Source of the DNA: Utricularia gibba | Lineage: Eukaryota; Plantae; Magnoliophyta | Direction of reading: 5' to 3' | DNA length: 64,000 nt | Assembly: GCA_002189035.1 (NCBI GenBank) | Contig: CM007990.1 | Coordinates: 186,001 to 250,000 of the forward strand | Part shown: positions 2,688-64,000 of the stretch, piece by piece | Layout: every line of letters starts with the position of its first letter | Numbering within the stretch: position 1 is the stretch's first letter | The notes under the pieces: model-generated | Database searches by the model: none | What the model saw: only the letters and a program-made list of their open reading frames with translations | Told to the model about the DNA's origin: nothing | Translations under genes and position numbers: made by a program

Positions 2688-4638
2688 CACCAAATTGAAG
2701 CAACGGAACAATAATCAGTGTTCGGAATTTAAAATGAGGTATACGTTATGCGGATCTCCCATACGACGACGTTTAGAGGAGAACTGTCGCATTTTGTATT
2801 CTGGGCTCCACTTGTAAACGCAAGCCCAACAACACCGACTAGATGAAGTAAATAACATTTACCCCTCGCCGGCGCCGTCGAAACACTAGGAGTGGTGTAC
2901 GGCGTAGTATCCGTACTTTCGCCGTCGTCTCCCACAAGTGTACCTACCTTTTGTCAATTTGAAACAATCTTTCAGTCTAAGCGCACTCGCGGCTGTTTCT
3001 GTCAGAAGACACCGCTGCTTCTCCGCTCATCGTGAAGCATCAACTTCAATGACAACCGCTTCCAATTATTTCCGATTGGAATTCGCGCATCGATGAGGTT
3101 AATTTCGTCGCGGTGAGCGCGATCCCGAAGCGCCGCCGCCACTCATTCTGTTGTGCTCAGCTGCAACAGGGTGATTCTTTTCTCCCGATGGTAAAGTGGA
3201 CTTACTTTTTCTGTAGTTCGTAATATCTAATGGATGGAACATTAACCAGCTTTCACCTCTTCTCTTACCCAATGCAGCTTCGAGACTATGATTTCTGATA
3301 CGTATTTTTGTACAAGTAAAATCGTTATCACAGAGAGCCCGCTGCAACAGTTACCTCAGGTAAACGTCAAATGTACATTCTGCATTTATAACAGATTCAA
3401 TTTCGAATTCGAACGTTGTGGCGGTTTAACAGGCCCAAGAATGTTGGGTGGTTGTAGTTCATCCACCCATCCCAGGAGGCCCATTACCACCACCACGACG
3501 ACCCTTGCTCTTGGTTCTTCCTCCAAAAGAAAGGACACACAGTGCTTGTCATTCGGGGTTATGATTCTGCCCACTGCTTTTCGTTTTCACATGACTTGAA
3601 CTAAACGACGTTGCAAATAATGGATGCGATGCCATAGATGGAGGAGGGGGAGGAATACTCAGAAAGCAATGAATACGGAAAAAGGCAAAGGCGTTTTAAA
3701 GGCGGAGGAGGGATTAAAGTTGTCTTTTCGTTTTGCAGTCCACGAACGAGTGTCAAAAGAGCAGCTTTTTCTCGCCCAAAGGGCGCCCACTTTCCACCAC
3801 CTCCTGCATCTTTGCATCATCCACTCGCAGGCAGGTTTCCATTTCATTCCACTCCTCCACACCCAGGCCAGGTGGTTTGGTTAGGTTAGTTTTCCCAGCA
3901 TCCTAAACCTCGTCTCCACAGCCATCCATAGCTGTGTCCAGGGATCGGAGATCATCCTCCCACCCGCTCATTAGTCGCCAGGATTGATTACGACGCTAAT
4001 CCTGGTGTAATAAAGTGGGAAAGCGCACAGCCTCCATTCCATTCCACCGGGATGATGCATGCTTTTGGAGATTGTTGGACTATCAATCATCAACCCACAA
4101 TCAATTACCACCGGCTTTTCGACATAATACTTACTATAAAGTAGTCACGGCATTAAGTACAGTTCCTTTGTTTAAAGAGATCATCCCAGGACCTGCCACG
4201 TCCTCCAACACCAATCTTAAACGAACCAACCGGATTGTTTCTAAATTTAGAATGTTCCAGTCTATGAATTTGATCATAACGCATATTAGAGGATGGAAAT
4301 TTTTCTAATTGGTCTGATTTTTGAATTCATTTTAGTATACAGCTTCCGTGATTGATTATCGGATAAGAATGGGGCTGTGATGAACCAAAACATGCATTTA
4401 GAGATATGGTATCATTGTTCCACTTTCAAGATATGGGTCTGGAAAAGTTATTCCATCTCTCAAAAGCCGCGCTTTCTTTTAATTTCAGATAAAAACGGGG
4501 ATTTTCGCCCGATCGGAGGGCCGTTTTCGAAGGACTAACAACTGTTTCGGACAATTTGATCGATGATTTGCAAGGGAAATCACACCAACTAAGAAGCGCT
4601 TTACAGGATTGGTTAAAGCGGAAATGTTTCTACATGTC

Positions 4639-6284
4639 CTAGAGTTTAAACACCGGGCCCTGGTCAAGACTTCCACGTATCCCCAGTTCTGCATCACCGC
4701 CCTGGATCTCGAGAGTTTCGTCGTCTAAACGAGCGTTTAAGTCCAGTTCAACATGAGATGATACGGATCCGTTTTCGAGCCTCTTTGTCCTCCGCGAGCA
4801 GGCGGTTTCCGGTGATCCATTGTCAACGGCACTCTTCGGTGACGTTTCCATTACTTCGCTGGAGGAAACAGAGTTGATGGATGTGAAAATGTTGCATTCC
4901 CAACGCTGATTAGTATTCTGTTTGTCGGTGGAAAAGTGGAAAGAATTTGATGAAGCGGAAGGGAATGTCGGGCCAAAAGAAAACGTTTCAGGCTCGGCTG
5001 GGAATTTCGTCGACCACTTGGTGGTGTCCTCATCCTCTGCACCTACTACAGAAGCTTCCAAGTCTTCGCCTCTGGATATTAAAAAAAACAGACCAATGAA
5101 AATGAGGATGAAAAGCAGTGAAATTGTTGATTTTGATGCATGATCCAACATACCCAGAATGTGAAATGAGACTCAGACCCAAACTATTAGCAGGAACAGT
5201 TACTGGGTGAAGTCCCCATATTGATTCGAGCGAGCGGCAGCCGTTTTTGCATCTCATGTAAGTTTGAAACGTAGCGATTCCCATTAGCCAAAATCGCCCA
5301 ATTTCTCCGACATCCGAGACCAATCTCCCGATCTCCATAATCATGTACTCTACACAGCTTCTGTAGTAATCATTTTCTCGCTCTATGTTTACAGTGTAAT
5401 GGCTGATCCAATTCAAATCTCCCAAGTATAAAACGACCCCTTTTCCGGCGAGACCCTGAACCAAGTTACTCAATTCCATCATTTTCCGGCGACCCAAGTC
5501 GCCATCGAGATCGCAGAAGGAATGCAGAGGAGGGATGGTTACGAATTTCACGTTTCTGAAATCTTCAACTACTTCTTCCATATCAACCAAATTCATCAGC
5601 TCCTTGATTGTAGCTTCCAGCTTTGAAATGCATTCTCCTACTATGACGAAACTCCGTCTTCTTCTGTTGGTGATCAGTGCCTCAATAATGGAGTACACAT
5701 CGTGTCTCCTAATTGCGGAACAGGGATTGTTGAGTTTGACATCTTGCTTTCATTTGATTTCTGGGAACTCATCTCCAAAGAAACCGCCTTTTCAACATTC
5801 GATTTGATTCGGGAGCTGCAGAAGCCAGCTTCCTTCATAACTCTGCTGACACTGGGATCATCCAGTATGGACACGATCAGCTGCTCGAGTTCGATTTTCG
5901 ATACACTCAACTGCTTCTGACTCTCAACCGCTCCGCGGCGGTGGTGAGCTTGAGCCCTTTTGAAAGCTGCAGCGAGAGCGTTCGAGGGTGACGGGTAACA
6001 TCGCCGGCCGATGACCGCGTCGGCCGTGGAGGAGGACGAAGAGGGGAGGCGGTTAAGAGCAACGCTGAAACAGAGCTCGAGAGCCTTGCACTGAAGAGGA
6101 TGTGAATTGGATTGCAAGCAGGCTGCTCGAAGTACCCCGGCTGCCTCCGACAGCATGGTGGTGGCGACGTGGAGGGGGTCACCTGTGCATGCCCTCGCCT
6201 CCGCGCGAGATCCACCGCCTGTTTCACCACCGCGGCAGCCTCCCCGCGGAGAGATTGATGTCCCCCATAACCTCGTGGTTTCAT
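4639..6284 (-). CDS. SMXL3: SMAX1-like protein of the SMXL3/4/5 clade, internally shortened (N + D1 + EAR-like C-terminus); two -1 frameshifts in homopolymers
   Basis: [95 protein letters not shown]. Intron 5153-5072 (GT-AG, phase 2). C-terminus VELDLN...[15 protein letters not shown]. Frameshifts at G5 6174-6178 and near 5749-5751. Confidence 0.85.
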
Positions 6285-7330
6285 ATTCCCACCTTCCGTT
6301 GCCCGCTCCCCTCCTGCAACTCTATATTTAAGTGGGATCTCATTCCTCCCAAGTCCACCCCTTCCTCAACATGAATTCATTAGAAAATACAGTCAAAACC
6401 CACTCACAAACAACATCACTTTGCCTGACACTCACATTAAACTACAATTTTGTTTTTTAAAACTCAACAATACCCTGTTTATTGGAATTGTTGTGCATAT
6501 AATTTTTCCTTCGCAGTGAGCTTAACAGAAATTGGAAAAATTCCATGGCAAAAAGCAAGAGAAAGGGAGAATATTCCCAGAGAATCTTAGGGTTAGCGTC
6601 TGCAAGTGGATATGTACGTAAAGGCGCAGAGTTCTTTTCATGGAGTCCGACTGGAGTAACATAACACCGTGTTTCAAGAATACCGTTTCCAAAAACAGGA
6701 GAAGGTGGAATCCATGTTGTCACATTTCAGCACCGCCAAAGGCAACTCGCCTTTACTCCGTTTCACTATTGCTCTTTGACCCCCCCGCACACTTGTTAAA
6801 TTACATTATCCCCTCCTATCTTTTGTTTTTAATGCAAATCATGCCTATCTTCTTTCGTAGTGGGACAACACCATCCCTTCCCCAAACTTTTTGGTTATTT
6901 GATTTAATGCCGCATCTTTTTGATATTCAAGTTATGTGGAGTGGGATGTGCTATTGGAAAAGGGAGACACAGCATACTGCTTTTACAGGGAGCCAAATAT
7001 CGCAGTATTCGAGGCGTTCCAAAGGCATAAACTTTGCATGCATGAGACATGGAACGTGCTTTCGCTGCTTAGAGAATGGTACTTGAAAGCTTTATCAAAA
7101 AATGGCTAACTTTCTCCTACAAAAGGCGTTCATCTTGAGGGTGGGCTTCATGATTCTCTCTCAGTGGGGTTAGAGGTTGGGCCGGGGTTCTATTGGGTTG
7201 CTAGAGGCCCAATAGTTATAAGGCGAGAATACCGTCGATTCCTAGTTCACATTTGGCCCGGATCGAAGGGCACGGGCGGTTTAAACTCACGGAAAGCGAC
7301 GGAATATCGGAGACAGCTAAGACGAAAAAC

Positions 7331-36112: not shown

Positions 36113-37118
36113 ATGAAGTTGGTGATTTTGAGGTTTTTTCTCTTACTAGTTCTCGCTCACGCCTCTAATTTCCAGAGAGACTTCGAAATTACATGGGGAC
36201 ACGGCAATGCTAGAGTTCTCGACTCCGGGAACCTTGTCAGTCTTTCGCTGGACAGAATTACGGGATCTGGTTTTGAATCGAAGAACGAGTTTCTCTACGG
36301 GAAGATTGATATTCAGATGAAGCTTGTTCCAGGGAATTCTGCAGGAACCGTCGCGGCTATTTACGTGCGTTCATTTTCAAATCTGGGTTTTTCCTTGTTT
36401 CGTTTATTTTCAACTGATTTCTCCACCCCCCTCCTGCTGCAGTTTTCATCTTTGGGAGCGACTCACGACGAGATCGATCTTGAATTCCTCGGTAATCTCA
36501 CTGGGCAGCCTTACACTCTTCACACAAATGTGTTTACACAAGGCAGAGGTGGTAGAGAACAGCAGTTTTATCTCTGGTTTGATCCAACGAAAGACTTCCA
36601 CACATACTCCATTCTCTGGAATCCCCAAATGATCAAGTGAGTACCACATGAATCCACCGTTCTGTTTCCTTGTATTCAAAGAGTGCGTGAAGGAACAAGC
36701 TCGATTTCGAAATGCCCGTCTGATGAATGTGCTTGAAAACAGGTTCATGGTAGATGGCGTACCAGTTAGACAGTACAAGAACTTGAAATCGTTGGGGATA
36801 CCGTATCCAACGAATCAACCAATGAGGATTTACGGCAGTATATGGAATGCAGATAGCTGGGCAACCAGAGGAGGACTGGTGAAGACGAATTGGAGTCATG
36901 CTCCATTCACTGCTTCATTCAGAAACTTCCATACATTGTCTTGTCTAGGCACTAAGTCCAGTGATTGCTCTCTTACAAACTCGTGGTTTTCCGAGTCGTT
37001 GGACAGTACAGAGGAGCAGAGGATGAAGTCGGTGCGGCAGAAGTACATGGTTTACGATTACTGTAGTGATTCCAAGCGATTTACAAGAGGGTTTCCTGGT
37101 GAATGCACAATGGCTTGA
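36113..37118 (+). CDS. XTH: Xyloglucan endotransglucosylase/hydrolase (GH16, group I/II), 3 exons
   Basis: Exons 36113-36364, 36443-36636 and 36743-37118. Catalytic motif [11 protein letters not shown]; [12 protein letters not shown]; [11 protein letters not shown]; [10 protein letters not shown]. Confidence 0.95.
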
Positions 37119-39884: not shown

Positions 39885-42703
39885 TTATCTTCCGTTGAGA
39901 GCTGACAACTGCGCAAACATCGCCGTGCCGGAATGTTCGTCAATATCTCTACTTCCCACCGGGAAATTACTGGTGTCGCTTACGAGCGGAGTCGTCGCGG
40001 GACTTGGAGCAGCTGCTGGAGGCGCTTGATTCTCCATCTCTGTCTTTCCTTGAGCCGAATTCTCCTGAAGATGCAAAGCAGACTCCAAATGCCACAGCAC
40101 ATCGCCCATCGAGGGACGATCAACGCCGTACTCGGCCAGACATTTCTCCGCCGCCTCGGCGAACTTGTTCATCGACTCGCCGTCGATGTGGCCGACGAGA
40201 GTTGGATCGATGATCTTATCAAGAAGCCCCTTTCTCTTCCACTGCATTGCCCATTCAGCTAAGTTTACCTGCTCCCTAGGTAACGCGGGATTTATTGCCG
40301 GCCGAGCGCATAACGCTTCGAGCAAAACGACTCCGAATGAGTAGACATCGGATTTCTCAGTCAACTGCTGCTTCCGGAAATACTCAGGGTCGAGATAACC
40401 GAAGCTTCCTTTCACGGCGGTGCTGACATATGCTTGACCGGTGACACCGTCCTTCGACAGGCCGAAATCCGCCATTTTGGCGACGAAGTTCTCGTCGAGC
40501 AAAATGTTGGTTGTTTTCACATCACGATGGATGATTCCCTGCGTCGTGCCGGTGTGGAGATAGTGGAGGCCGCGGGCGGAGCCGATGCAGATCTCCAGAC
40601 GCTGTTTCCATGACAGAGTGGGCAGATTCTTGCCGTATAGATGGTCACGGAATGGGCCGTTGGCCATGTACTCGTACACGAGGATCATTTCCTCGTTCTC
40701 TTCGCAGTAGCCGATCAAAGAGACGAGGTGACGATGGCGGAGCTTGGAGAGCATCTGAATCTCCGTCTGAAACTCGTTGATCCCCTGTTCTGATTGGGGG
40801 TTACCTCTCTTCACGGCAATTTTCAGGCCGTCGTCTATCTCAGCGAGGTACACATTTCCAAAACCACCGACACCTATGATACCGGCAGAATCCCAGTTCT
40901 TGGTGGCTTCTTGAAGTTCTGCAAGTGAAAAGTATCTGCCTAATCCCATCGTAGAAGAGAAAAATTGACTCTTTTTTGAGCCTAAAGAACTTTTGCTGTT
41001 GGAAATGTAGCTTGAATCTCCGGAGTGAATAGGTAGCAGCCATTTTTGCTTTTATTCCAATCATCAGGGCGTTTCTTCCACTTGACAGCCATAGCACCCA
41101 ATCCAATAAAAGCTCCAAACATCATAGCAAAACCAACGGCGGCGACGGTTCCTTTGACGGCCCCATTGCCTCCGGCCCGTTCGCCGTTGATTCCGAAAAT
41201 TGTTCATCTTCAGCACCTCAATGCCATTGAGAATTGCGTTTTTTGTCCCCGCATTCTCGTTCGTTGGACCAACTTGTACCGTTAATGGATCAAGGGTAGA
41301 AACCATGGTGGTGTTCGCAATGAAATCGGCGAAGTAGGCGGCGTTCAAACCGCCGGCGACCGTCGTTAGATCCAAGCCGGAAATCACCGTTATGCCATTG
41401 ATGTAAACATTGAAGTAAAGATCATTGGGTGACTTGCTCACGATATCAGCGAAGTGCAACCGGATAAGGTATTGGAATGAAGAATCTATCTTCATTTGCC
41501 AGGTGATATTGAAACTAGGGGCCTGTAATTGATACACAGATTCACAAGATTGCAGGGTGTATCTTAGAAAATGTTGATATCATTTTGCTAACCTCAACGT
41601 TGGCGTTGGCCATCACCGTTATGCCATTGATGTAAACATTGAAGTGGCTCACGATGGCGAAGTGCAACCGGATAAGGTATTGGAATGAAGAATCTATCTT
41701 CATTTGCCAGGTGATATTGAAACTAGGGGCCTGTAATTGATACACAGATTCACAAGATTGCAGGGTGTATCTTAGAAAATGTTGATATCATTTTGCTAAC
41801 CTCAACGTTGGCGTTGGCCATCTGCGTGGCGGTGGCGTAAACGCGCGGTGGTGCAATCAACGGCGACTCACCCTCCGGATAAGTGATTACATTTGTCTCG
41901 ACGGAGGCGGGGCTACCCATGGCCTTGGGTTGAAGGTAACTGTCATCAGTATCCCAATGTCTCCCCAAGGTGTCATTTTGCGCAGTGAGAATCGGGCCAC
42001 CGGCGTTAAGCCGGTAAACCGTCTCGTACGCGATTTTTGAGATCCCGGTGATGCTCGCTTTCGGAAAAACAGCGGTGGCGGCGTCGTTGATCAGTATATC
42101 CGGAGCCGAAACGAACTCGATGCCGTTAACGAACGCCATGCTTCCCGACGCCGGCTGGAAGATAAGTGAAAACCTCTCCGTCGTACAATCGACGAGAAAC
42201 TCCCTAAATGTCGTCGTTTCATTGGCAGGGGTCTGAAATTCGTGGATCAACACGAGACCGTTGTTCGTGACCACCCTGAAAGCGGCGGATTTCAGATCCC
42301 TGTCATTGCTCTGAATCGCTGCGAAATGTAACCGGACCCAGTGGTACCCGGGTCGGGTCACGGGGAAAGAGTACGTCGCGTCTCTCTCGAACACCCTAGC
42401 CGAATCGTATACCTTCGATGGAAAACTTGGATCCGGATTCGGATCCACGACTTGGATTAGAGGGCCATCGTAGGCTAGGTATTTGCTGGAATCATGATCT
42501 CCGATGAAAGCTCGCCCACCGGGAGCGGGAACCCCGGCGGAATTCCCGCAGTCGAGGAGAATGTTGTCCGGCGGTGTGAATGAATCCGATTTCGCCGGCG
42601 CGTTGATTCTGGAAGAGTGGATGGAAATGGGAGACGTGAACAGAACCAGGAGGATAGCTGCAAGCGGCGCAGGTCCCCGCCGCCGTAGAGGCGCATCGTC
42701 CAT
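39885..42703 (-). pseudogene. CrRLK1L malectin-like receptor kinase, BUPS1/2-like; disrupted as assembled (pseudogene or misassembly)
   Basis: Malectin-like ectodomain (DNILLDCG, HWVRLHF, YRLNAGG, YLIRLHFAD); TM segment GTVAAVGFAMMFGAFIGLGAMAVKWKKRP; intact kinase [11 protein letters not shown]...HRDVKTTN...DFGLS; C-terminus [18 protein letters not shown]. Frame breaks at ~41197 and ~41045, plus a 208-bp internal duplication. Confidence 0.75.
41383..41822. repeat. 208-bp-period tandem duplication containing a complete 70-nt intron
   Basis: Identical introns at 41800-41731 and 41592-41523, with duplicated flanking coding sequence. One copy has net 3-nt and 18-nt internal deletions. Confidence 0.9.
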
Positions 42704-53557: not shown

Positions 53558-54522
53558 CCCAGCCACCTGATTCTCCCCCATGCTTTCACAGATAAAAACA
53601 TATTCCCTGAACATGCTTTTTGAAAGCAGGAGTTCAAGGTTGCTAGCCCAAAGGAGTTATTTTTACCTGGATGGGGTATTCAGTTGTTTAATCTGTATAT
53701 CATTATTTTACTGGGAGTCACTGCAGTATGCGCAAGCACTCCGCCGCACCTTCCGGATCGGTCGGTCGGAACCCCAGATTGATTTGTCAGCATGGGCTCC
53801 GTCCTCCGTCCTCCGCCTCCAACATTCATACATTTATTTCAAATAATTTATTCAAAATAAATATTCGTATTATCTTAAATAATCAAATACATTGGGTGTT
53901 TATTCGATAGTTAATATAATGCAAATTATATCTACCTCCACTAAAAACAATCATTTTTGTAAATTTATCTGATATTTCTTCAATTTAAATGCTACAAAAT
54001 GCAATCAAAACATCTTTACTGCATTGCCAACTTTGGAGAACATTAATTGTAGATGCTCTTTTATATCATGGAAAAGGTACGATTTAATTTACATTAAATA
54101 TAAAAAAGAAATCAAAACAGTAAATATAATTAATAATGTGAAAAAACCCTGGGGTCCTCCTGGCGGCTAAGTTTGCTGGACTTACCTGGACACCGTAGCG
54201 TGTCAGATTCAAAATAAATAATGCAGTAAATAGAAGGAATAATGTTATTCTATTCGTACTAAATGACTTTTTCTATCCCGATCATAAAAGCTCTGGGTCC
54301 TCCGGGCTGCCAAGTTTGGTGGATTTACACGGCAATGTGGGAGGGGAGGGAATTCCGGGGGTGGACTTGGAGAAGACTGGATCCAATAACATAAATGACT
54401 GAGATGAGTACATTTTGGAGAGCAGCCGCCAACCCACTAGCGGGTTTTTGCGTGTATAAAATGCGCTGCATTTTGGAGGTGATTCTCCGCACAGAGAGCG
54501 AGAGCGAGAGCAAGAAAGGGAG

Positions 54523-55570
54523 ATGATGGCTCCCGTTCCGAGGTTCATTCTCTTTGCTACCTTCGTTTTAGGTGCTGCTGCTTTCCTGCAAGTAAGCGGG
54601 AGGGAAATGCCGGTGTCTGTGGACTCGGGAGATGAAGGTTAGTCGCCATCTTCTTCTTCTTCTTCTCTTTTTGTTGCTGAGAGTAGACAACCCTGGAGAT
54701 CATTTTGTTCATGGTTATGTGTGGGTGTCCTTTTTCAGCAAAGCATTTTAAGGAAGGAACGGTTAACGATGGTAAGTGGTTCTTTCCATGGCATCATCCC
54801 TGGTTTCACGGAGCAAACGGCGCTGGAGGAAATGGCGGCGGTGGTCTAGGAGGAGGAAATGGCGATGGTGGTCAGGGAGGAGGAAATGGCGATGGTGGTC
54901 AGGGAGGAAATGGCGATGGTGGTCAGGGAGGAGGATTGGGCGGCGGTGGCCAGGGAGGTGGAAATGGCGGCGTTGGCCCGGGAGGAGGATACGGCGGCGG
55001 TGGTCAGGGAGGAGGAAGTGGCGGCGATGGTCAGGGAGGAGGATTGGGCGGCGGTGGTCAGGGAGGTGGAAATGGCGGCGTTGGCCCGGGAGGAGGATAC
55101 GGCGGCGGTGGTCAGGGAGGAGGAAGTGGCGGCGATGGTCAGGGAGGAGGATTGGGCGGCGGTGGTCAGGGAGGTGGAAATGGCGGCGTTGGCCCGGGAG
55201 GAGGATACGGCGGCGGTGGTCAGGGAGGAGGAAGTGGCGGCGATGGTCAGGAGGAGGATTGGGCGGCGGTGGCAGGGAGGAGGATTGGGCGGCGGTGGCC
55301 AGGGAGGAGGATGGAGCTCGGCGGCGGTGGCCAGGGAGGAGGACTCGGCGGCGGTGGCCAGGAGGAGGAGGAGGAGGACTCGGCGGCGGTGGCCAGGGAG
55401 GAGGACTCGGCGGCGGTGGCCAGGGAGGAGGACTCGGCGGCGGTATTCTGGGGAGGACACGGCGGTGGTATTCTGGGGGAGGACACGGCGGTGGTATTCT
55501 GGGAGGAGGACACGGCGTTGGTGGTCTGGGTGGGGGATTCGGCGGCGGTAGCGTGGGTGGAGGATACTGA
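54523..55570 (+). CDS. Secreted glycine-rich protein, array copy 1 (long G/N/D/Q-repeat type), 2 exons; -1 slips in G-runs after ~55250
   Basis: Signal MMAPVPRFILFATFVLGAAAFLQVSGRE; intron ~54639-54738; AKHFKEGTVNDGKWFFPWHHPWFH, then Gly repeats ending GGGY*. Confidence 0.8.
54929..55260 (+). repeat. 108-nt coding tandem repeat (36 aa) x3 in GRP copy 1
   Basis: ATTGGG anchors at 54935, 55043, 55151 and 55258 (periods 108, 108, 107). Unit GGLGGGGQGGGNGGVGPGGGYGGGGQGGGSGGDGQG. Confidence 0.9.
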
Positions 55571-56353
55571 AGCTTCAAGCGACCGAACAGAAAACTCCTC
55601 GAAGTATAATAAATCCGCTTGCGCCAATGTAAACATGGTTTCCGTAAGTCTCGTCACCTTGTACTCGTCACATGCCTGGTGCATGTTCATGTTTTTATTC
55701 TAATGTTTTCGAATAAATTTAAGGTTGGTTGTATCTTTCATTCCTATGCAATGCCTCACTGATTCTCCAGGTACACACATTGCAAGTCCCGTCTGTTATA
55801 AATATGGTCAATACCTCTTACCTGTGTGATCAAAATTTTGATTGAGTGTGTGAGATAGAATGTGAAAATGAGATCCCACAGTAATCACATGATTGATTTT
55901 CACCTTCATTCATTCACTTGGTCCCTCAAAGTATGCGTTGCGTGATCAGGTGACTGACCCAAGCTATCGAGGCATCCATCCATCCCCACCCAACCCAACA
56001 TAACTGGGCTCTTCATATCACAGAAGCCTGCCTGCCTGCCTGCCCGCCTCAGATCTGATCTGATCTGATACAATTTGGAGTTAATTTTTATTGATACCCA
56101 TGCCTCAGATCTCATCTGGTGTTTGTTGTTCCCGAGGGTTGAACTTGTCATGGTGTCAAAGCATGTTTTTTGTGGATGACAGGGAGTCGGAGAAGAAGAC
56201 TTAGACTTGTTCCAAGGACGAGTAGAGAGACAGACATATCTTGAACAAACAACCACCCGACGGCCCTACTCCACATTAACTCACCCGCCACCTTCTCCTT
56301 CTATAAAATGCACTGCGCTCAGCAGGCGATTCACAACACACAAGACAAGGAAG

Positions 56354-56715
56354 ATGGCTTCCAGGTCCATTCTCTTCACCACCTTGGTCTTAGCTGCTGC
56401 TCTCCTCCTTGCCTCTTCCCTTGCCGCCGCCAGGGAAGTCCCGCAGTCTCTCGACACCGCAGAGCAACGTCAGTTATCTTCTCCTTCTTCTTCTTATTGC
56501 ACGAACTAGAAAACCCTAGATATTATGTCCATGTTTGTGTGCGTTTTTCAGCAAAGCAGTTCCAGCAAGGAACGGTTAACGATGGCAAGTGGTTCTTTTT
56601 CCCATGGTGGCATCATCAATGGAATCCTTGGTCAAACGGAGGATACGGCGGTGGAGGGTATGACGGAGGGTACGGCGGCGGTGGTTACGGCGGTGGCCCC
56701 GGAGGAGGATACTGA
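56354..56715 (+). CDS. Secreted glycine-rich protein, array copy 2, 2 exons
   Basis: MASRSILFTTLVLAAALLLASSLAAAREVPQSLD / AKQFQQGTVNDGKWFFFPWWHHQWNPWSNGGYGGGGYDGGY...GGGY*. Confidence 0.88.
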
Positions 56716-58506
56716 ACCCCAAAAGCGATGCATCTACTTCTACACCTGGGAACTACTACAGTAATCCGCAATACACCTGCGGTACATAATAAATGTGTTT
56801 GCGACTGTGTAAAACTTTGTGTCCGTACCTGTCTTCTCCATGTGGCTTCTTTCATGCAATGAATGTAGTATATATTACAACATGTGTTTCACAACCCATA
56901 CCACCAAATATCGGGTCGGATCCCTAACCATTTAGATTTCAACCCGAAATTAAAACATAAAACAAGAGAATAATCTTTTTTTTTTTTTGCATATTTTATT
57001 TATCACCCTTTGAACTTCCCATCAGTGGTGTAGTGAATAATTCGATAACAAAAGTGAAGAAAACGGTATTATCTAGTTGATCATAACATATAATTATAAA
57101 ATTAACTTCCCCAATATATTTAGTATATAATACCTATATTTTTTACCATATCTCAACACACACTCACATGGTGTAGAGTGGTATCATTTGACGCTATGCA
57201 ATAAAAAAAAATCTTGTTTCATGTACTACTAAAATTTTTTATTAACGCTATAAATTTAGATTATTATTAATTTAATATCACTAAAGAAAATAAAAATATT
57301 AATACAAAATCGTCAAGGACACATCACAATCTGCCTACCAATGATTTGTTCCTCAACTTTGATGCGGTTCGGGCCTCCGGGTTGATGGGTAGCATGTATT
57401 CTTTAGTTATATAATATGTGAGCCACGGTATTTAAAAAATCATGATTAAATTATGTTGCGCTATGAACTATTAATCGTAAAGCTAGGTTAAAGTCGACAT
57501 AATCACGATTGAATTGTTTTGGAATACAAGGTCTTTGTGTATTTTTATTTTTTTAGTGATTTAAAATAATGGGTATCCATGGGTAGTCCCCGAGTACCAA
57601 GTCAAACTTACGTCCCCGGATAGACACACTCCAAACCCTAACAAAAAAAAAAAAAAAATCAAGTTGGGTAATCCCCAGGTACCAAGTCAAACTCAGCAGC
57701 TCTGTGATCTGTTTTTGTTGTGAGGTTGAGCGTTGGTTTTGTGATGGGGAGGTTCATTTATCTGCTAACTGTTGAATCATTGACACGGGAAGACCTGGAG
57801 AGGGAGGCTGGGTCAAGCCAATCGAAGCATGACAGGGACCGCCCACCATGCGATCGATCATAAAGCTTCCAGTTGGCTCAGATCGCTGTAATGCAAATCT
57901 GGTGCCACTCCCCGATTCCCATCTGATCTCCCCAGTTTTTCCAAAATGCACACACAGTATATGCTGATGATATGAGGTAGCCTCAAGGCCTCTCGAATGA
58001 GGGAATGCTCGGCATCTTGACCTCAGGGAGGAATGATCAGGAACAAGTCAAACCCTCAAAAAAAGAAATGCAACTTGAGATAAAGAGATATCAGAAGTCA
58101 AATTGACGTAGACTTGGAAGATAATGAGAACCATGTGATGGAACTTAAACAATGATCTTCTTCTAAGAGTCGTTTGCTCTGATCATGATTCAGGCGTGTA
58201 GTTTAAGAACTACTCTCCGCATCAGGACTTTGTCAATACCAGCAGTAAATATCATCCCACATCGTATTCGTAAAGATAAATAGTTGGTTCGATGAAAACT
58301 TATATGAATTCATGATGATGTATAAACAGGGTTTCCATTCCAATGTGTTAAGCAGCTATTTGACAACTTAAAAGTTTGATAATAAATGCAACAAACAACC
58401 AGTCGAGGGGCCTACGCATTAACTCTTAGCTGTGGAGGCGTGTCGAGCTCCATCTCCTTCTATAAATAGTGGCGGATTCTGCAAGTCATCCTCACACAGC
58501 AAGAAA

Positions 58507-58971
58507 ATGGGTTCCATTCCAAGGCGCTTCTTGTTCACCACCTTTGCCTTGGCCGCTTTCCTCCTCGCCCTTTCGCAAGCCACCGCCAGGGATCTTCCGC
58601 AGCAGACTCTCGACCCGGCAGTGGAATGTAAGTCACACCCTTTTTCTCTCTCTCTAACCCTATAGAGTTTGCTCATACTTGCGTGTGTCTGTTGTTCAGC
58701 TAAGCATTCTAAGGAAGGAACGGTCAGTGATGCTAAGTGGTACGGTGGCGGCGGAGGCTTCGGCGGTGGATATGGAGGAGGCTACGGCAGCGGATATGGA
58801 GGAGGCTACGGCAGCGGATATGGAGGAGGTTACGGAAGCGGAGGAGGATTCGGTGGAGGAGGGGGGTACGGTGGAGGAGGTGGCTACGGAAGCGGAGGAG
58901 GATTTGGCGGAGGAGGAGGATACGGCGGTGGGGGTGGATACGGTGGCGGATACGGCGGAGGAGGATGGTGA
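58507..58971 (+). CDS. Secreted glycine-rich protein, array copy 3 (GGGY type), 2 exons
   Basis: MGSIPRRFLFTTFALAAFLLALSQATARDLPQQTLD / AKHSKEGTVSDAKWYGGGGGFGGGYGGGYGSGY...GGGW*. Confidence 0.9.
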
Positions 58972-59369
58972 AACTAAGAGCGGCCCTCCCTCCTAACCAG
59001 AAGAGAAACCCTCGTCATGCGTGTGCTATATAATAGAATAAGGATGATTGCACCAATGTACAACTCTGCTTGCGTCCATGGAGTCACTCCTCGTTTCATG
59101 CAATGCCATCCATAATTCATTCACCTTCAACACTGAACACACTTATCAAAGCACAACCGCGAGCACAGAGGAAACCCATTTCGACTGTAAAACATGCTAA
59201 TTCACTCCACTTAGAAATCTAACACGGCATACCAACCCCATCTATCACCTCATTCGGCTTGATTCATTATCTCTAATCATCTACTCTAATCTTTTATAAT
59301 ATAATATAAGTTTATTATATATTTGCATTCTACTTATGTTCATCTGACCCACCGTACTCTTAATTTCAA

Positions 59370-59410
<41 letters not shown>

Positions 59411-59462
59411 AGCTTCAAATTCCCAAGGACAAAAGGATCATTAGGCCACGCTTTCACGGTTC
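59370..59462 (-). rRNA. Isolated ~93-bp degenerate fragment of 25S rRNA (not a functional gene)
   Basis: The reverse complement reads GAACCGTGAAAGCGTGGCCTAATGATCCTTTTGTCCTTGGGAATTTGAAGCTAGAGGTGTCAGAAAAGTTACCACAGGGATAACTGGCTTGTG, matching the recalled plant 25S sequence ...GTGTCAGAAAAGTTACCACAGGGATAACTGGCTTGTG with a few substitutions. The flanks are non-rDNA. Confidence 0.85.
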
Positions 59463-61057
59463 CTATAAGAATTTGAACCGGAAATTGATACATAGAACGT
59501 GTAAACTATATGTCTCTCCATGGAGGCGATATATATGTTATGGGAGTACCCAACTCAAAGTTATGCATTTTGTTCTAAAATAAACAAATTGTAAATCATG
59601 AGAAACAATCAAGCAATGAAAGTATCCGACCCATGAATGTGTACAAATGTTTAAACATCTAGCGATGTTTCTCTAAAAATACTTTTCGAAATATTTCTCA
59701 TAAAACATAAATTAGATCTCTATAACTTCTTAAAAATAACAAACACTTCTAAGTTTTTGTTCTTTTTTAAACCAAAAGTCACTTGATAACAAAACTAATG
59801 CATTTTTCAAAAAAACATATAAATTTCACCAATTTTAGTGATTTCCACTAAAAATAATAATAAAATTATGGAACCCGTTTTTGCAGATGAATGTATCCGA
59901 CACATGGATTAGTGTGAACGTTTGACATCTTAACCTAAACGGCAAAGATTGGAACAAGTCAAAGCTAAAAAAACGACAATAATGATGAAGATGGGGCCAA
60001 AGTATTAATTAACAAAACTGATTAATGTGATTGCCTGCACAAATCTACAACTCCATGTACAAATGTGTTTTGGAACCCATTTTTTTTTATATAGTCATGT
60101 ATTTAAACTGGGTCTGTTTTATAATTATTTTTTAAATTATTATTTAATCGAATTGAAATCATTTTTTGCATTCATCATGAATTCAAATTGAATCGGGTTT
60201 AACTTCAGGTTGAACGTCTCCATCCAACATGAAGATATACATGAACATTAGTCAACATGACGTTGACCCCATTTCCACAAAATAAAAAATGAAGAGTGGG
60301 GCAGCACCTCTACTTATCCGGTGCTAAACCAAGTCAATTACGAAGAGTTCTTCCTTGACACTATTATCCCTAACATTTAAATATAATCATTTGTCTTTAT
60401 ACAGTTGACTCATTCGGACAGGAGCTTGGGTTTAGTTCGAATAATGAATTTTGAAATTTTAGGAAATCGAATCGAATAGAATTTCGACGGGGAAATTCAT
60501 CAAAGTTTGTATACGTTAAAAGGGTGATAAGTGAACCAAATCCAATAGTGAATTTTTTTAAAATATGGTAAAATCAAAACCAAAATTTCGAAACCAAAAA
60601 ATCGATCCGATTCCGTAATCTCACCGTGTTAGGTACCAAGTCACGCTTAGCGACTAGGTCAAATTTAAAAAAACAAGGCTTCATTTTTATATGGCAAGTA
60701 TTTGGGCAAAGGAAAAAAAAAATGAATATGATGCAAAGATACGTACAATGCATCGTCCCCATGAGTGCTGTGGCGTGTTGTTTGAAAGAGATTTCTTTTT
60801 TTATATTTGTCATTAAATAAATCAATAAAAAATGTATACATAACCCTAGAAATCCGATTTTTTAATTGAAATAAGAAAGACATTTTCAACAAAGAAGGTG
60901 TCAAAGTGAGTGAGTCATCTTGGTTGTTTACGTGATTATCACTTCAGCGAGCAACTAATCCATGGGCTACTCTTAACTGACTCTGCTAATGTTTTCTATA
61001 AATACCAACGCATTTTGGAAGGAACACACACACAAAGCCATCATAGGATCAAGAACA

Positions 61058-61489
61058 ATGGGTTCCTTTCCAAGGTTGGCTCTTTTCGCCGGCTTGCTTG
61101 TGTTTGCGCTCCTCCTCGTCTCTTCCCACGCTGTGGGGAGAGATCTAGAAGAGAAACCCGACTTCGTTGGCTCAAGTAAGCTCACTTGTTCTTGTTTTTG
61201 TGTGTGTGTGTGTAGTGGACTCACAATAAAGCCCTAGCTAGAGATTTCGTTCGTGCATGAATGCATCCTTGTTGTCTGGTTTCAGCCAAGCCTACTGAAG
61301 CAGGAGGGGTCGGCGAGTCTCAATGGGTGGTTATGGCGGCTACGGTGGTTGGGGAGGACGTGGCTGGGGTGGAGGATATGGCGGTTGGGGAGGACGTGGC
61401 TGGGTGGAGGATATGGTGGCTGGGGACGCCGCTGGGGAGGTGGCGGTTATGGTGGCTGGGGACACGGCGGATGGGGTGGTTGGAATTGA
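61058..61489 (+). CDS. Secreted glycine-rich protein, array copy 4 (Trp/Gly/Arg type), 2 exons; two -1 slips in G-runs
   Basis: MGSFPRLALFAGLLVFALLLVSSHAVGRDLEEKPD / KPTEAGGVGESQW, then GGYGGWGGRGW repeats ending GGWGGWN*. Frame is restored by one G each at ~61326 and ~61403, judged against the sister repeat. Confidence 0.8.
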
Positions 61490-62640
61490 GGACACCGAGC
61501 CTGGGAACTGAAGAAACTCTGCTGAAACCGCCTCTCATCACTTAAGAATCCTAGAAAAATAAAGATGATTGGCGTAAAACTTGTCTGGTATGCCTGTCTG
61601 TGTGTGTCTATGTAATCTTTTCTAGTTCTATGTGATACTACTCTCTGTGCGTCACCAATAGACACAAAGCTCGATGCGAATCGCGATACACCTGCTGCTT
61701 ACACCGATTTACACACAAATCGTTGAAGATTACAAAAAGGGCTGATAATCCCTGCAAGTTAAGTTGACGTCGACCTTGAGAGACTTATCTGGAACATGAC
61801 TCCTCTGTGTATAGTCATGCCAAGTAGATAACTACCAGGTCCAACACTCTGTCAATTTCTGGCATCCAGGTGCTTGAGTGATCGATTACTAGAAAACAGC
61901 TTAGAGCAGAAGGCACGTATTTCCGCATATTTCACAAATTCCGATCCGATCTTAATCTGATCATCATGGTTTCTTTCAAAACCCTAAAACGAGCAAGGCT
62001 TGGTGGAGGCGCAGGAAACCCTAGTGAATGAAAGAGGTTTATTACTGGAGGGTCATTCAGTCGTTGACAGTAGACACATCGGGTAACCATGCTCTTTGGA
62101 GAAGGTGTTGGACTCTCGGTGATTAAATGGCGAAATCCTCAATGATTATTGTTGGAGAAACCTTGTGTGGTTATAAGAGAATCATGTTGAAGTTGAAAGT
62201 TATTGTAGCTCCCTAACTTGAAACTAAGATTTGAGTTTGTAGTTCCTAACTAGGAACCTAAAAGTTTGGATCTTGAGCTTGAGACACAAGAGCAGTCTTT
62301 GTATTCAAAAAAACTGCTTTACAAAGCTGTAACCACCAAGAATATATAGATAGATTTGAGTTGCAACTGTTGTAAAAGTTGATGTTGTATTATCAGATTT
62401 GCAATGGGCATCAATTAAGGTTGGGCTTGTGCTTGGGTGGGCTTTTCAACATGGTTTTATGGGAGCCTTGTGCACCTTGTAGGTCCAGTTGGGTTCTTTC
62501 CCAAGTTTCAGGGTCTTCCAAATCCACTTCAGCAAATATGCACGGTTTGGTCAAATGTTCAATGATTTTCTTATCATCTTTTAAAATAAGTATTCGATGG
62601 ATCGAGCGATCATACATGAAACTCAAATATATAATAAACA

Positions 62641-63140
62641 TGTATCATGTTAGAAAAAATTAGATTTAACCAATTAATTATAACCTACAATTTTTTATAT
62701 ATTTTACATATCACTTTCAAATCCTGATGTATTATTATTTGTTCTAATAAATACTCGCCTTCAAATCGAACTTATTTGTGATCTGGTTAAGATTTATTTT
62801 TTTGATGATTATAGATAATGTTTAGGTTATAAGTTGGATTTAATTGTTTGTCACCTAAACATAATGCATCTCTTTATTTTTTTTATTTTTAACCAAAGCT
62901 TGGACCAATACGAAACCCGTCTTGATCACCCAAGTCATGACATAAGGCAAACGTTTTGGTATCATGTTAAAATTAAGGATCTAATGGATTGTATGAGTAT
63001 ACGTGAAGTTATTGTATACGATAAAACATGAATTATATTTGAAAAAATTAGATACAACCAATTAATTATAATTCTTAATTTTTTATATAAATGATTGTGT
63101 CACTTTCAAATTAATATGTGCTATTATTTATTCTAATCAA
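62641..63140. repeat. Degenerate ~110-bp AT-rich direct repeat, ~390 bp apart
   Basis: GAAAAAATTAGAT..AACCAATTAATTATAA...TCACTTTCAAAT...TATTATTT.TTCTAAT at ~62652-62750 and ~63041-63138. Confidence 0.6.
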
Positions 63141-63393
63141 TTCAACCGTGGCATGCGGAGATGTATGAAGGAAATATAATTTTTCCGATCGATAGGAGTT
63201 ACAGAATGTGTGGATTATCTTCGTTGGGAGACAATTATCAGCTCAACTAACTCCTAATCCATGGCCCTACTCCTTAACTCCAATTATGCATGCAAACAAA
63301 TAGAGATCACTCACTCAATAGTTTTTTCCTTCTACAAATACCAAGCCTTAGTGGAGCTGCACTCCCACAAAATATTCTACAGAAGGAAGAAGA

Positions 63394-63751
63394 ATGGCTT
63401 CCTTCCCCAGGGTTGCTCTCCTCGCGCTCTTCGCCCTCCTCCTAGCCTCTTCCCTCGCTGCTGCCAGGGATCTCCCGGAGAATCCCAACGCCGTCGACGC
63501 ATGTAAGTCACCCTTCCGCTTTTATCGTGAAACTCTAAAAACTTTGCTCATGCCTCCTCCTTGTCTGCATGCTTTCAGCCAAACCCAGTGAAGCAGGAAA
63601 GGTTGATGACGCCAAGTGGTACGGCTACCATTGGGATATCCTCGTTACGGGTACGGCTACCATTGGATATCCCCATTACGGGTACGGCTACTATTCGGGA
63701 TATCCCCATTACGGGGGCGGCTGGTACGGCGGACACCCTGGCTGGCATTGA
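63394..63751 (+). CDS. Secreted glycine-rich protein, array copy 5 (Tyr/His/Pro type), 2 exons
   Basis: MASFPRVALLALFALLLASSLAAARDLPENPNAVD / KPSEAGKVDDAKWYGYHW...GYPHYGYGYYSGYPHYGGGWYGGHPGWH*. Confidence 0.85.
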
Positions 63752-64000
63752 GGACCCCCCGGACTCCGACTCCCCCGACGGAAGGATATCTCCTGTCACC
63801 GCGCATCATCCCCATGTATCCGGAGTGCAATAAAGATGCTTGCGTCAATCTGGTGTTGTGTGTGTCCCTGTGTAATCTCCCTGGTCTGCTTTCATATGAA
63901 AAAAATGGTTTGTGTCGTGTTTCAATGCTTCCTCAACCAAACACGGCATGCATAGGATTGCAACTTAGGCCCCAATAATGCAGAATCTTGACACACACGT

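Follow-up and report, generated by a model that had tools for sequence, protein, structure and literature searches.

What do the five small genes at positions 54523-63751 (+ strand) of a 64,000-nucleotide stretch of the Utricularia gibba genome encode? The stretch (assembly GCA_002189035.1, contig CM007990.1, positions 186,001 to 250,000) is called the window here and is numbered from its own first letter. From the letters alone, the genes (g1 to g5, in the order 5' to 3') had been taken for an undescribed arsenal of secreted peptides, in which a conserved leader and a processing motif would precede a hypervariable mature domain. In the analysis reported here the region was assigned, with a probability of about 80%, to a tandem array of plant glycine-rich protein (GRP) genes of class I type, belonging to the family PF07172; all five genes are probably intact, and the breaks in their assembled reading frames are most likely assembly errors.

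Structure and family of the five genes

The genes lie ~2 kb apart, and each consists of two exons separated by one GT-AG intron of 72-110 nucleotides (nt), which is in phase 1 and located at the same codon in 5/5. Exon 1 is 109-121 nt long with a phase 1 end at its 3' side; the intron splits the codon directly before an invariant Lys, and exon 2 opens with the last two bases of that codon. A TATA-like box was read 50-65 nt 5' of the ATG in all five genes. Paralogy is far above chance, with cross-matches to ~1e-9 and an identical gene structure, so that the five same-strand, two-exon paralogues with a phase-1 intron at one place, as first described, were confirmed by the GT-AG models together with the cross-matches. 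When the five N-terminal regions were used as tblastn queries, exactly five loci were matched, and no sixth copy was found upstream in the 64-kb window. As assembled, g2 (92 residues) and g3 (130 residues) are intact genes, the repeats of g3 having periods of 12-54 nt, all multiples of 3 and without insertions or deletions; g1, g4 and g5 contain frame breaks, which are treated in the next section. The gene models are as follows.

54455..54461, + strand: g1 TATA box (TATAAAA), ~62 nt 5' of the ATG
54523..54637, + strand: g1 exon 1, 26-residue signal peptide and start of the acidic spacer (REMPVSVDSGDE), phase 1 end
54638..54738, + strand: g1 intron, 101 nt, GT-AG
54739..55570, + strand: g1 exon 2, coding part; GTVNDGKW, block of Trp, Phe, His and Pro (W/F/H/P block), Gly-rich repeats of 27/108 nt
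56302..56308, + strand: g2 TATA box
56354..56468, + strand: g2 exon 1, signal peptide and start of the spacer
56552..56715, + strand: g2 exon 2 including the stop; GTVNDGKW, WFFFPWWHHQWNPW block, GGY repeats
58461..58468, + strand: g3 TATA box
58507..58627, + strand: g3 exon 1
58700..58971, + strand: g3 exon 2 including the stop; GTVSDAKW, GGGY/GSGY/GGGF repeats
60997..61004, + strand: g4 TATA box
61058..61175, + strand: g4 exon 1
61286..61489, + strand: g4 exon 2; GGVGESQW, then 36-nt repeats for Gly/Trp/Arg/Tyr, out of the leader's frame as assembled
63333..63340, + strand: g5 TATA-like box (TACAAATA)
63394..63502, + strand: g5 exon 1
63579..63751, + strand: g5 exon 2; GKVDDAKW, Tyr/His/Pro/Gly repeats

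The predicted signal peptides of g1-g5 comprise 24-27 residues with a hydrophobic core, Ala or Val at position -3 and Ala or Gly at -1. By this -3/-1 rule the predicted cut falls directly before an invariant Arg in every gene, for which reason R-[DE]-[LVM]-[PE] would be the N-terminus of the secreted protein; the signal peptide is thus predicted to end before the Arg, and not with (A/G)R(D/E)(L/V/M)(P/E) as the sequence-only reading had placed it. Downstream of the predicted cut, an acidic spacer (isoelectric point, pI, 4.4-5.5), always 25-26 residues long, was found in 5/5, ending in V-x-[DE]-[GAS]-[KQ]-W; the endings quoted earlier for the pro-segment, GTVNDGKW (g1 and g2), GTVSDAKW (g3), GGVGESQW (g4) and GKVDDAKW (g5), are all present.

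Behind the junction Trp, the tail of g1 consists of its W/F/H/P block followed by repeats coding GGGN/GGGQ/GGGL/GGGY, and that of g2 of a related block followed by GGY; the tail of g3 is built from GGGY/GSGY/GGGF units, that of g4, in its Gly frame, from GGW/GGR/GGY units, and that of g5 from Tyr/His/Pro/Gly units, e.g. GY/PHY. The share of Gly is 66% in g1, 44% in g2, 73% in g3, 57-67% in the Gly frame of g4 and 27% in g5. The tails do differ, but the different repeat chemistry that had been attributed to every copy does not extend to the W-F-F-P-W-H-H block, which is common to g1 and g2. Cys is absent from every leader, spacer and Gly-frame tail of g1-g5, as had been noted for the tails. In the published definition of class I GRPs, a region high in glycine and built of (GGX)n repeats comes after a signal peptide (PMC5852109, Table 1). 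GGX/GGGX units fill the tails of g1-g4, and g5 alone is atypical; on their sequence, g1-g4 are class I GRPs by the published definitions and g5 is an atypical, Gly-poor relative, while the Cys-rich C-terminal domain by which class II is recognised is missing from all five.

For family assignment the spliced proteins were compared with PF07172 (GRP; gathering cutoff 30 bits). Scores above the cutoff were obtained for g2 (51.0 bits, E 2.3e-13) and for the first 95 residues of g3 (38.8 bits), which upholds the earlier remark that the genes resemble the secreted GRP family; scores below it, all with E <=1e-3, were obtained for g5 (24.7 bits), g4 with X at its breaks (23.9 bits) and the first 95 residues of g1 (20.1 bits). 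The hidden Markov model alignments of g2, g3 and g5 begin at profile position 1-7. Separate exons gave faint matches to Pfam for g2 only (17.9 and 11.3 bits).

Several points weigh against this assignment. Three of the five copies stay under the gathering score, and PF07172 models a signal peptide plus a low-complexity Gly-rich region, for which it has been criticised in the literature. The signal peptide cuts were placed by a rule of thumb and not by a trained predictor, and one of the breaks in g5, at its second G run, would be two bases short, a poor fit to a pure one-base error model. In addition, no orthologue was obtained from large protein databases: word-indexed homologue searches found no match for g2 exon 2, for g3 exon 2 or for the g2 leader; when the g5 leader was compared by phmmer with 1.84 billion representatives, the single match was a repetitive, irrelevant protein of 769 residues; the ESM Atlas returned for g2 exon 2 bacterial low-complexity look-alikes only (scores <=0.71), which are not evidence; and spliced g2 had no exact match in the protein collection. 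Because the queries are short and of low complexity, these blank searches say nothing on novelty. Junction strings such as VNDAKY retrieved no paper by full-text search, and a literature search for GRPs of Utricularia and for plant GRPs rich in Trp retrieved nothing relevant. Alfalfa has GRPs induced by cold or abscisic acid with the junction N-E-V-N-D-A-K-Y, which may offer a further lead.

Since the PF07172 model has been criticised in this way, relatives were also sought at the level of the sequences themselves. Coffee GRPs of class I type (e.g. OrthoMCL family 1231, CcContig6984) and of class II type, known from expressed sequence tags (PMC3045888, Additional file 11; published 2011), align colinearly with the leaders of g1-g5 over their whole length. 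Common to both sets are the signal peptide, A-(A/T)-R-[DE]-L after the predicted cut, a polar/acidic spacer of ~20-25 residues containing S-K, and a [DE]-[GAS]-K-aromatic junction (G-V-E-E-G-K-Y, G-L-E-E-S-K-Y, E-G-E-A-K-Y) immediately before Gly repeats, with tails that vary among paralogues. In this alignment the S-K of the coffee proteins falls on the codon that flanks the intron and on the invariant Lys of g1-g5. Identity is 16-40% between the window genes and the coffee GRPs, and 27-58% among the window genes. The junction aromatic residue is Trp in g1-g5 and Tyr in coffee; the W/F/H/P block of g1 and g2 before the Gly repeats was not seen in the coffee proteins, the only relatives compared; the C-terminal ...AEPQN motif of the coffee GRPs is lacking from g1-g5; and g5 differs from them in being rich in Tyr, His and Pro. 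As far as the K-Y/W junction, class II GRPs (AtGRP3, coffee family 4011) share this N-terminal region, so that what had been called a conserved leader and processing motif is the family-wide PF07172 N-terminal region, shared by class I and class II coffee GRPs alike.

A comparable gene arrangement has been described in soybean, where GmGRP1-5 (Gm02) form one same-strand cluster of five PF07172 genes within tens of kb and the PF07172 family shows two exons in 10/11 genes, tandem duplication and purifying selection (ratio of non-synonymous to synonymous substitution, Ka/Ks, ~0.42; PMC13685382). Compared by description and not by sequence, the Utricularia array resembles the soybean family in its tandem same-strand cluster and in its two exons with one intron; it differs in its tighter spacing, and GmGRP1, a member of the soybean cluster, has five exons. 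With g2 and g3 above the PF07172 cutoff, published coffee GRPs of the same layout and a five-gene cluster in soybean, the array could not be retained as 'undescribed'.

Frame breaks in g1, g4 and g5

In g4 the frame that runs from the splice site past QW reads VVMAATVVGED... and reaches a stop at 61545, whereas the Gly/Trp tail is read in the two remaining frames, up to a stop at 61487-61489. The GGWGGRGW tail credited to this gene is therefore not in the leader's frame as assembled; it needs two extra G, one at the run 61325-61327 and one at the run 61402-61404, and at the latter the assembly has GGG where a sister repeat has GGGG (61366-61369). In g1 the Gly frame is continuous for ~170 residues to ~55250 (first short run at 55250-55251); some six changes of frame follow up to 55475, so that the long Gly repeats reported earlier are in frame for the first part only. 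The Gly-frame stop of g1 at 55568-55570 yields a ...GGGY end as in g2, and the assembled open reading frame (ORF) continues as non-Gly sequence to 55703. The ORF of g5 is open and reads YGYHWDILVTGTATIGYPHY; a 10-codon stretch (63635-63664), bounded by the runs GGG (63633-63635) and GG (63665-63666), does not keep the register of the repeat, whose units measure 32, 31 and 33 nt, the 33-nt unit alone being in register. The GYHWGYPHY reading quoted for g5 had skipped this stretch, which is explained either by two assembly under-calls (one of them of two bases) or by a natural, compensated frameshift.

On indirect evidence, the assembly has most likely called G/C runs one base too short at the breaks of g1, g4 and g5, and for this reason all five genes are considered probably intact. 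Each break coincides with a run of G or C that falls short of its length in sister repeats, and the shifted segments are clean Gly repeats, without stops in the Gly-rich frame and without accumulated substitutions. If the breaks were real instead, g1, g4 and in part g5 would be decaying or recoded members of a birth-and-death array and the canonical GRPs would be g2 and g3 only. Pseudogenes are indeed common in tandem arrays, the frames as assembled are broken, g4 as assembled has no match to PF07172 (it scored only when read in the Gly frame, each of the two breaks being written as X), and the two offsetting shifts of g5 leave its ORF open, as a tolerated natural change would. Against such decay stand the shifted segments, where neither stops nor substitutions have accumulated and the Gly repeats, though in a different frame, are still perfect, and the position of all shifts at G/C runs; we consider real breaks unlikely.

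Sequencing reads point in the same direction. When g4 exon 2 was sampled with 21 words of 31 letters, none of 22 public runs, whether DNA or RNA, contained more than 13/21. With two wrong bases, this exon would lose 62/185 of its possible 31-letter words, corresponding to ~7/21 of those sampled, and the best DNA and RNA runs miss about this share. RNA runs of three studies contain words of g4 exon 2; g4 is therefore transcribed, which also speaks against decay.

The same kind of defect was found in a conserved gene of the window. A SMAX1-like gene (4600-6300, minus strand) is split among overlapping ORFs that do not lie in one frame. Aligned with the solved SMAX1 (9kkx_D), it matches residues 39-66 in one frame, the alignment ending ...QVTP, and resumes at residue 74 in the next frame (E 3.8e-34), with the intervening PLHVATTM read in the second frame; the flanking matches together with this peptide put the switch exactly between residues 66 and 67. 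It coincides with a run of C at 6174-6178 that has five bases instead of the six required, and a second shift lies somewhere in 5700-5780. This breakage looks like a one-base-short assembly signature and not like a pseudogene, and because a conserved gene of the window carries it, assembly error is likely for the GRP breaks as well.

Two coffee GRP expressed sequence tags (PMC3045888, Additional file 11) are normal up to the K-Y junction or slightly past it and then continue in an alternative frame of Gly/His repeats; since they show such slips, frame slips in GRP repeats would be a common sequencing artefact elsewhere too. Gly-rich coding repeats in this assembly should accordingly be treated with caution, as they most likely carry one-base homopolymer errors by which intact genes may look recoded or broken.

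Origin of the tails and surroundings of the array

Over the leader and junction (~50 codons; Nei-Gojobori method) synonymous divergence (dS) among g1-g5 ranges from 0.47 to >1 and the ratio of non-synonymous to synonymous divergence (dN/dS) from 0.12 to 0.65; exon 1 is 57-77% identical at the DNA level. Judged from these values, the five genes are old duplicates under moderate constraint. In the closest pair, g1/g2, which has the W-F-F-P-W-H-H block in common, the intron is ~86% identical. The tails consist of short tandem units and differ mainly by which unit was amplified. Short coding repeats of this kind may expand, contract and be replaced by slippage and by unequal exchange among old tandem duplicates; as such turnover would account for the tail differences, targeted hypervariation need not be invoked. 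The architecture of a conserved leader with a hypervariable mature peptide, for which defence-peptide families had been cited, was not recovered: the leaders are 27-58% identical, the tails differ by repeat turnover, and four of the five are uncharged or acidic.

The 3' flanks of g3, g4 and g5 are conserved although their tails are unrelated. In the 3' untranslated region these genes have in common an element around the poly(A) signal, AATAA[AG]GATG followed by ATTG (g3, g4) or CTTG (g5), located at 59030-59050 (g3), 61555-61575 (g4) and 63825-63845 (g5).

The neighbourhood is ordinary gene-dense plant DNA, with genes for LEA_2, SMAX1-like, PMC2NT, RabGAP, GH16 XTH and malectin-like receptor kinase proteins. 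The wall-related neighbours among them, a GH16 xyloglucan endotransglucosylase/hydrolase-like gene (36113-37118, + strand) and the malectin-like receptor kinase gene (39885-42703, - strand), both lie 12-18 kb upstream of the GRP array, a proximity that by itself makes no functional link.

Function

According to reviews, class I GRPs are wall components in growth and stress responses. For g1-g5, removal of the predicted signal peptide before the invariant Arg would yield a secreted protein made up of the acidic spacer, the junction Trp and a repetitive tail of Gly, Tyr, Trp, Phe and His. The most likely destination of such proteins is the apoplast or cell wall, where they would be disordered and have a structural or stress-related role, and by analogy with Tyr-rich wall proteins their aromatic residues may allow self-association or oxidative cross-linking.

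Alternatively, the acidic spacer could be a propeptide that is cut at acidic-x-K/Q|W to free antimicrobial, metal-binding or adhesive Gly/aromatic peptides. The model for this is the precursor shep-GRP of Capsella bursa-pastoris, a GRP-type precursor from which the Gly/His-rich antimicrobial shepherins are cut. As a secreted Gly-rich precursor with His-rich repeats it resembles the predicted proteins of g1-g5, and a propeptide would also be in keeping with the His- and Trp-rich blocks of g1, g2 and g5, the basic Gly-frame tail of g4, the acidic character and constant length of the spacer, and a junction conserved in five paralogues and in the coffee GRPs. In shep-GRP, however, shepherin I follows the signal peptide directly, with no spacer between them, and a dipeptide linker and a C-terminal peptide are removed, whereas g1-g5 have their 25-26-residue spacer, no dipeptide linker and mostly uncharged tails. 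The acidic residue of the junction is Asp or Glu interchangeably. Four of the five tails are without Lys or Arg and have a pI of 4.1-6.5, the g4 Gly-frame tail being the only basic one, which makes the tails unlike a cationic antimicrobial arsenal. To our knowledge the junction matches no recognised plant pro-protein processing motif. The 'processing motif' of the sequence-only reading is thus better described as the family-wide N-terminal region, the only processed relative that had been cited, the shepherin precursor, having no such spacer, and we regard propeptide release as improbable. Phytaspase-type cleavage after the junction Asp was also considered and set aside because this position is Glu in g4 and in coffee.

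A narrower form of this idea, which we rate somewhat lower still, is that the PF07172 spacer is a propeptide cut at acidic-x-K/Q|Trp and that the array frees non-cationic peptides rich in Trp/Phe/His/Pro or in Tyr/His/Pro, such as the W-F-F-F-P-W-W-H-H block of g2 or the 11-residue units of g5 of the type Y-G-Y-H-W-G-Y-P-H-Y-G. Their His residues would confine membrane activity or metal binding to acid pH, for instance to the trap or gland fluid of a carnivorous host.

A role as signalling ligands for wall-associated or malectin-like receptor kinases would follow the example of AtGRP3, the class II GRP that binds WAK1, and a malectin-like receptor kinase gene does lie ~12 kb upstream. Closeness to a kinase gene alone shows nothing, and the Cys-rich C-terminal domain that defines class II GRPs, needed there for WAK1 binding or wall cross-linking, has no counterpart in g1-g5, which contain no Cys in any copy; this role appears very improbable.

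With the genes read as secreted GRPs of PF07172, the family is known, and the five genes are new members of it, a few of their tail motifs being unusual. GRP specialists may find the Trp/Phe/His/Pro block of g1 and g2 of interest. Conservation of the spacer and junction from Utricularia to coffee indicates that PF07172 proteins have more at their N-terminal end than a signal peptide. The value of the finding lies mainly in annotation, as a lineage-specific expansion of a known but poorly understood family of wall and stress proteins.

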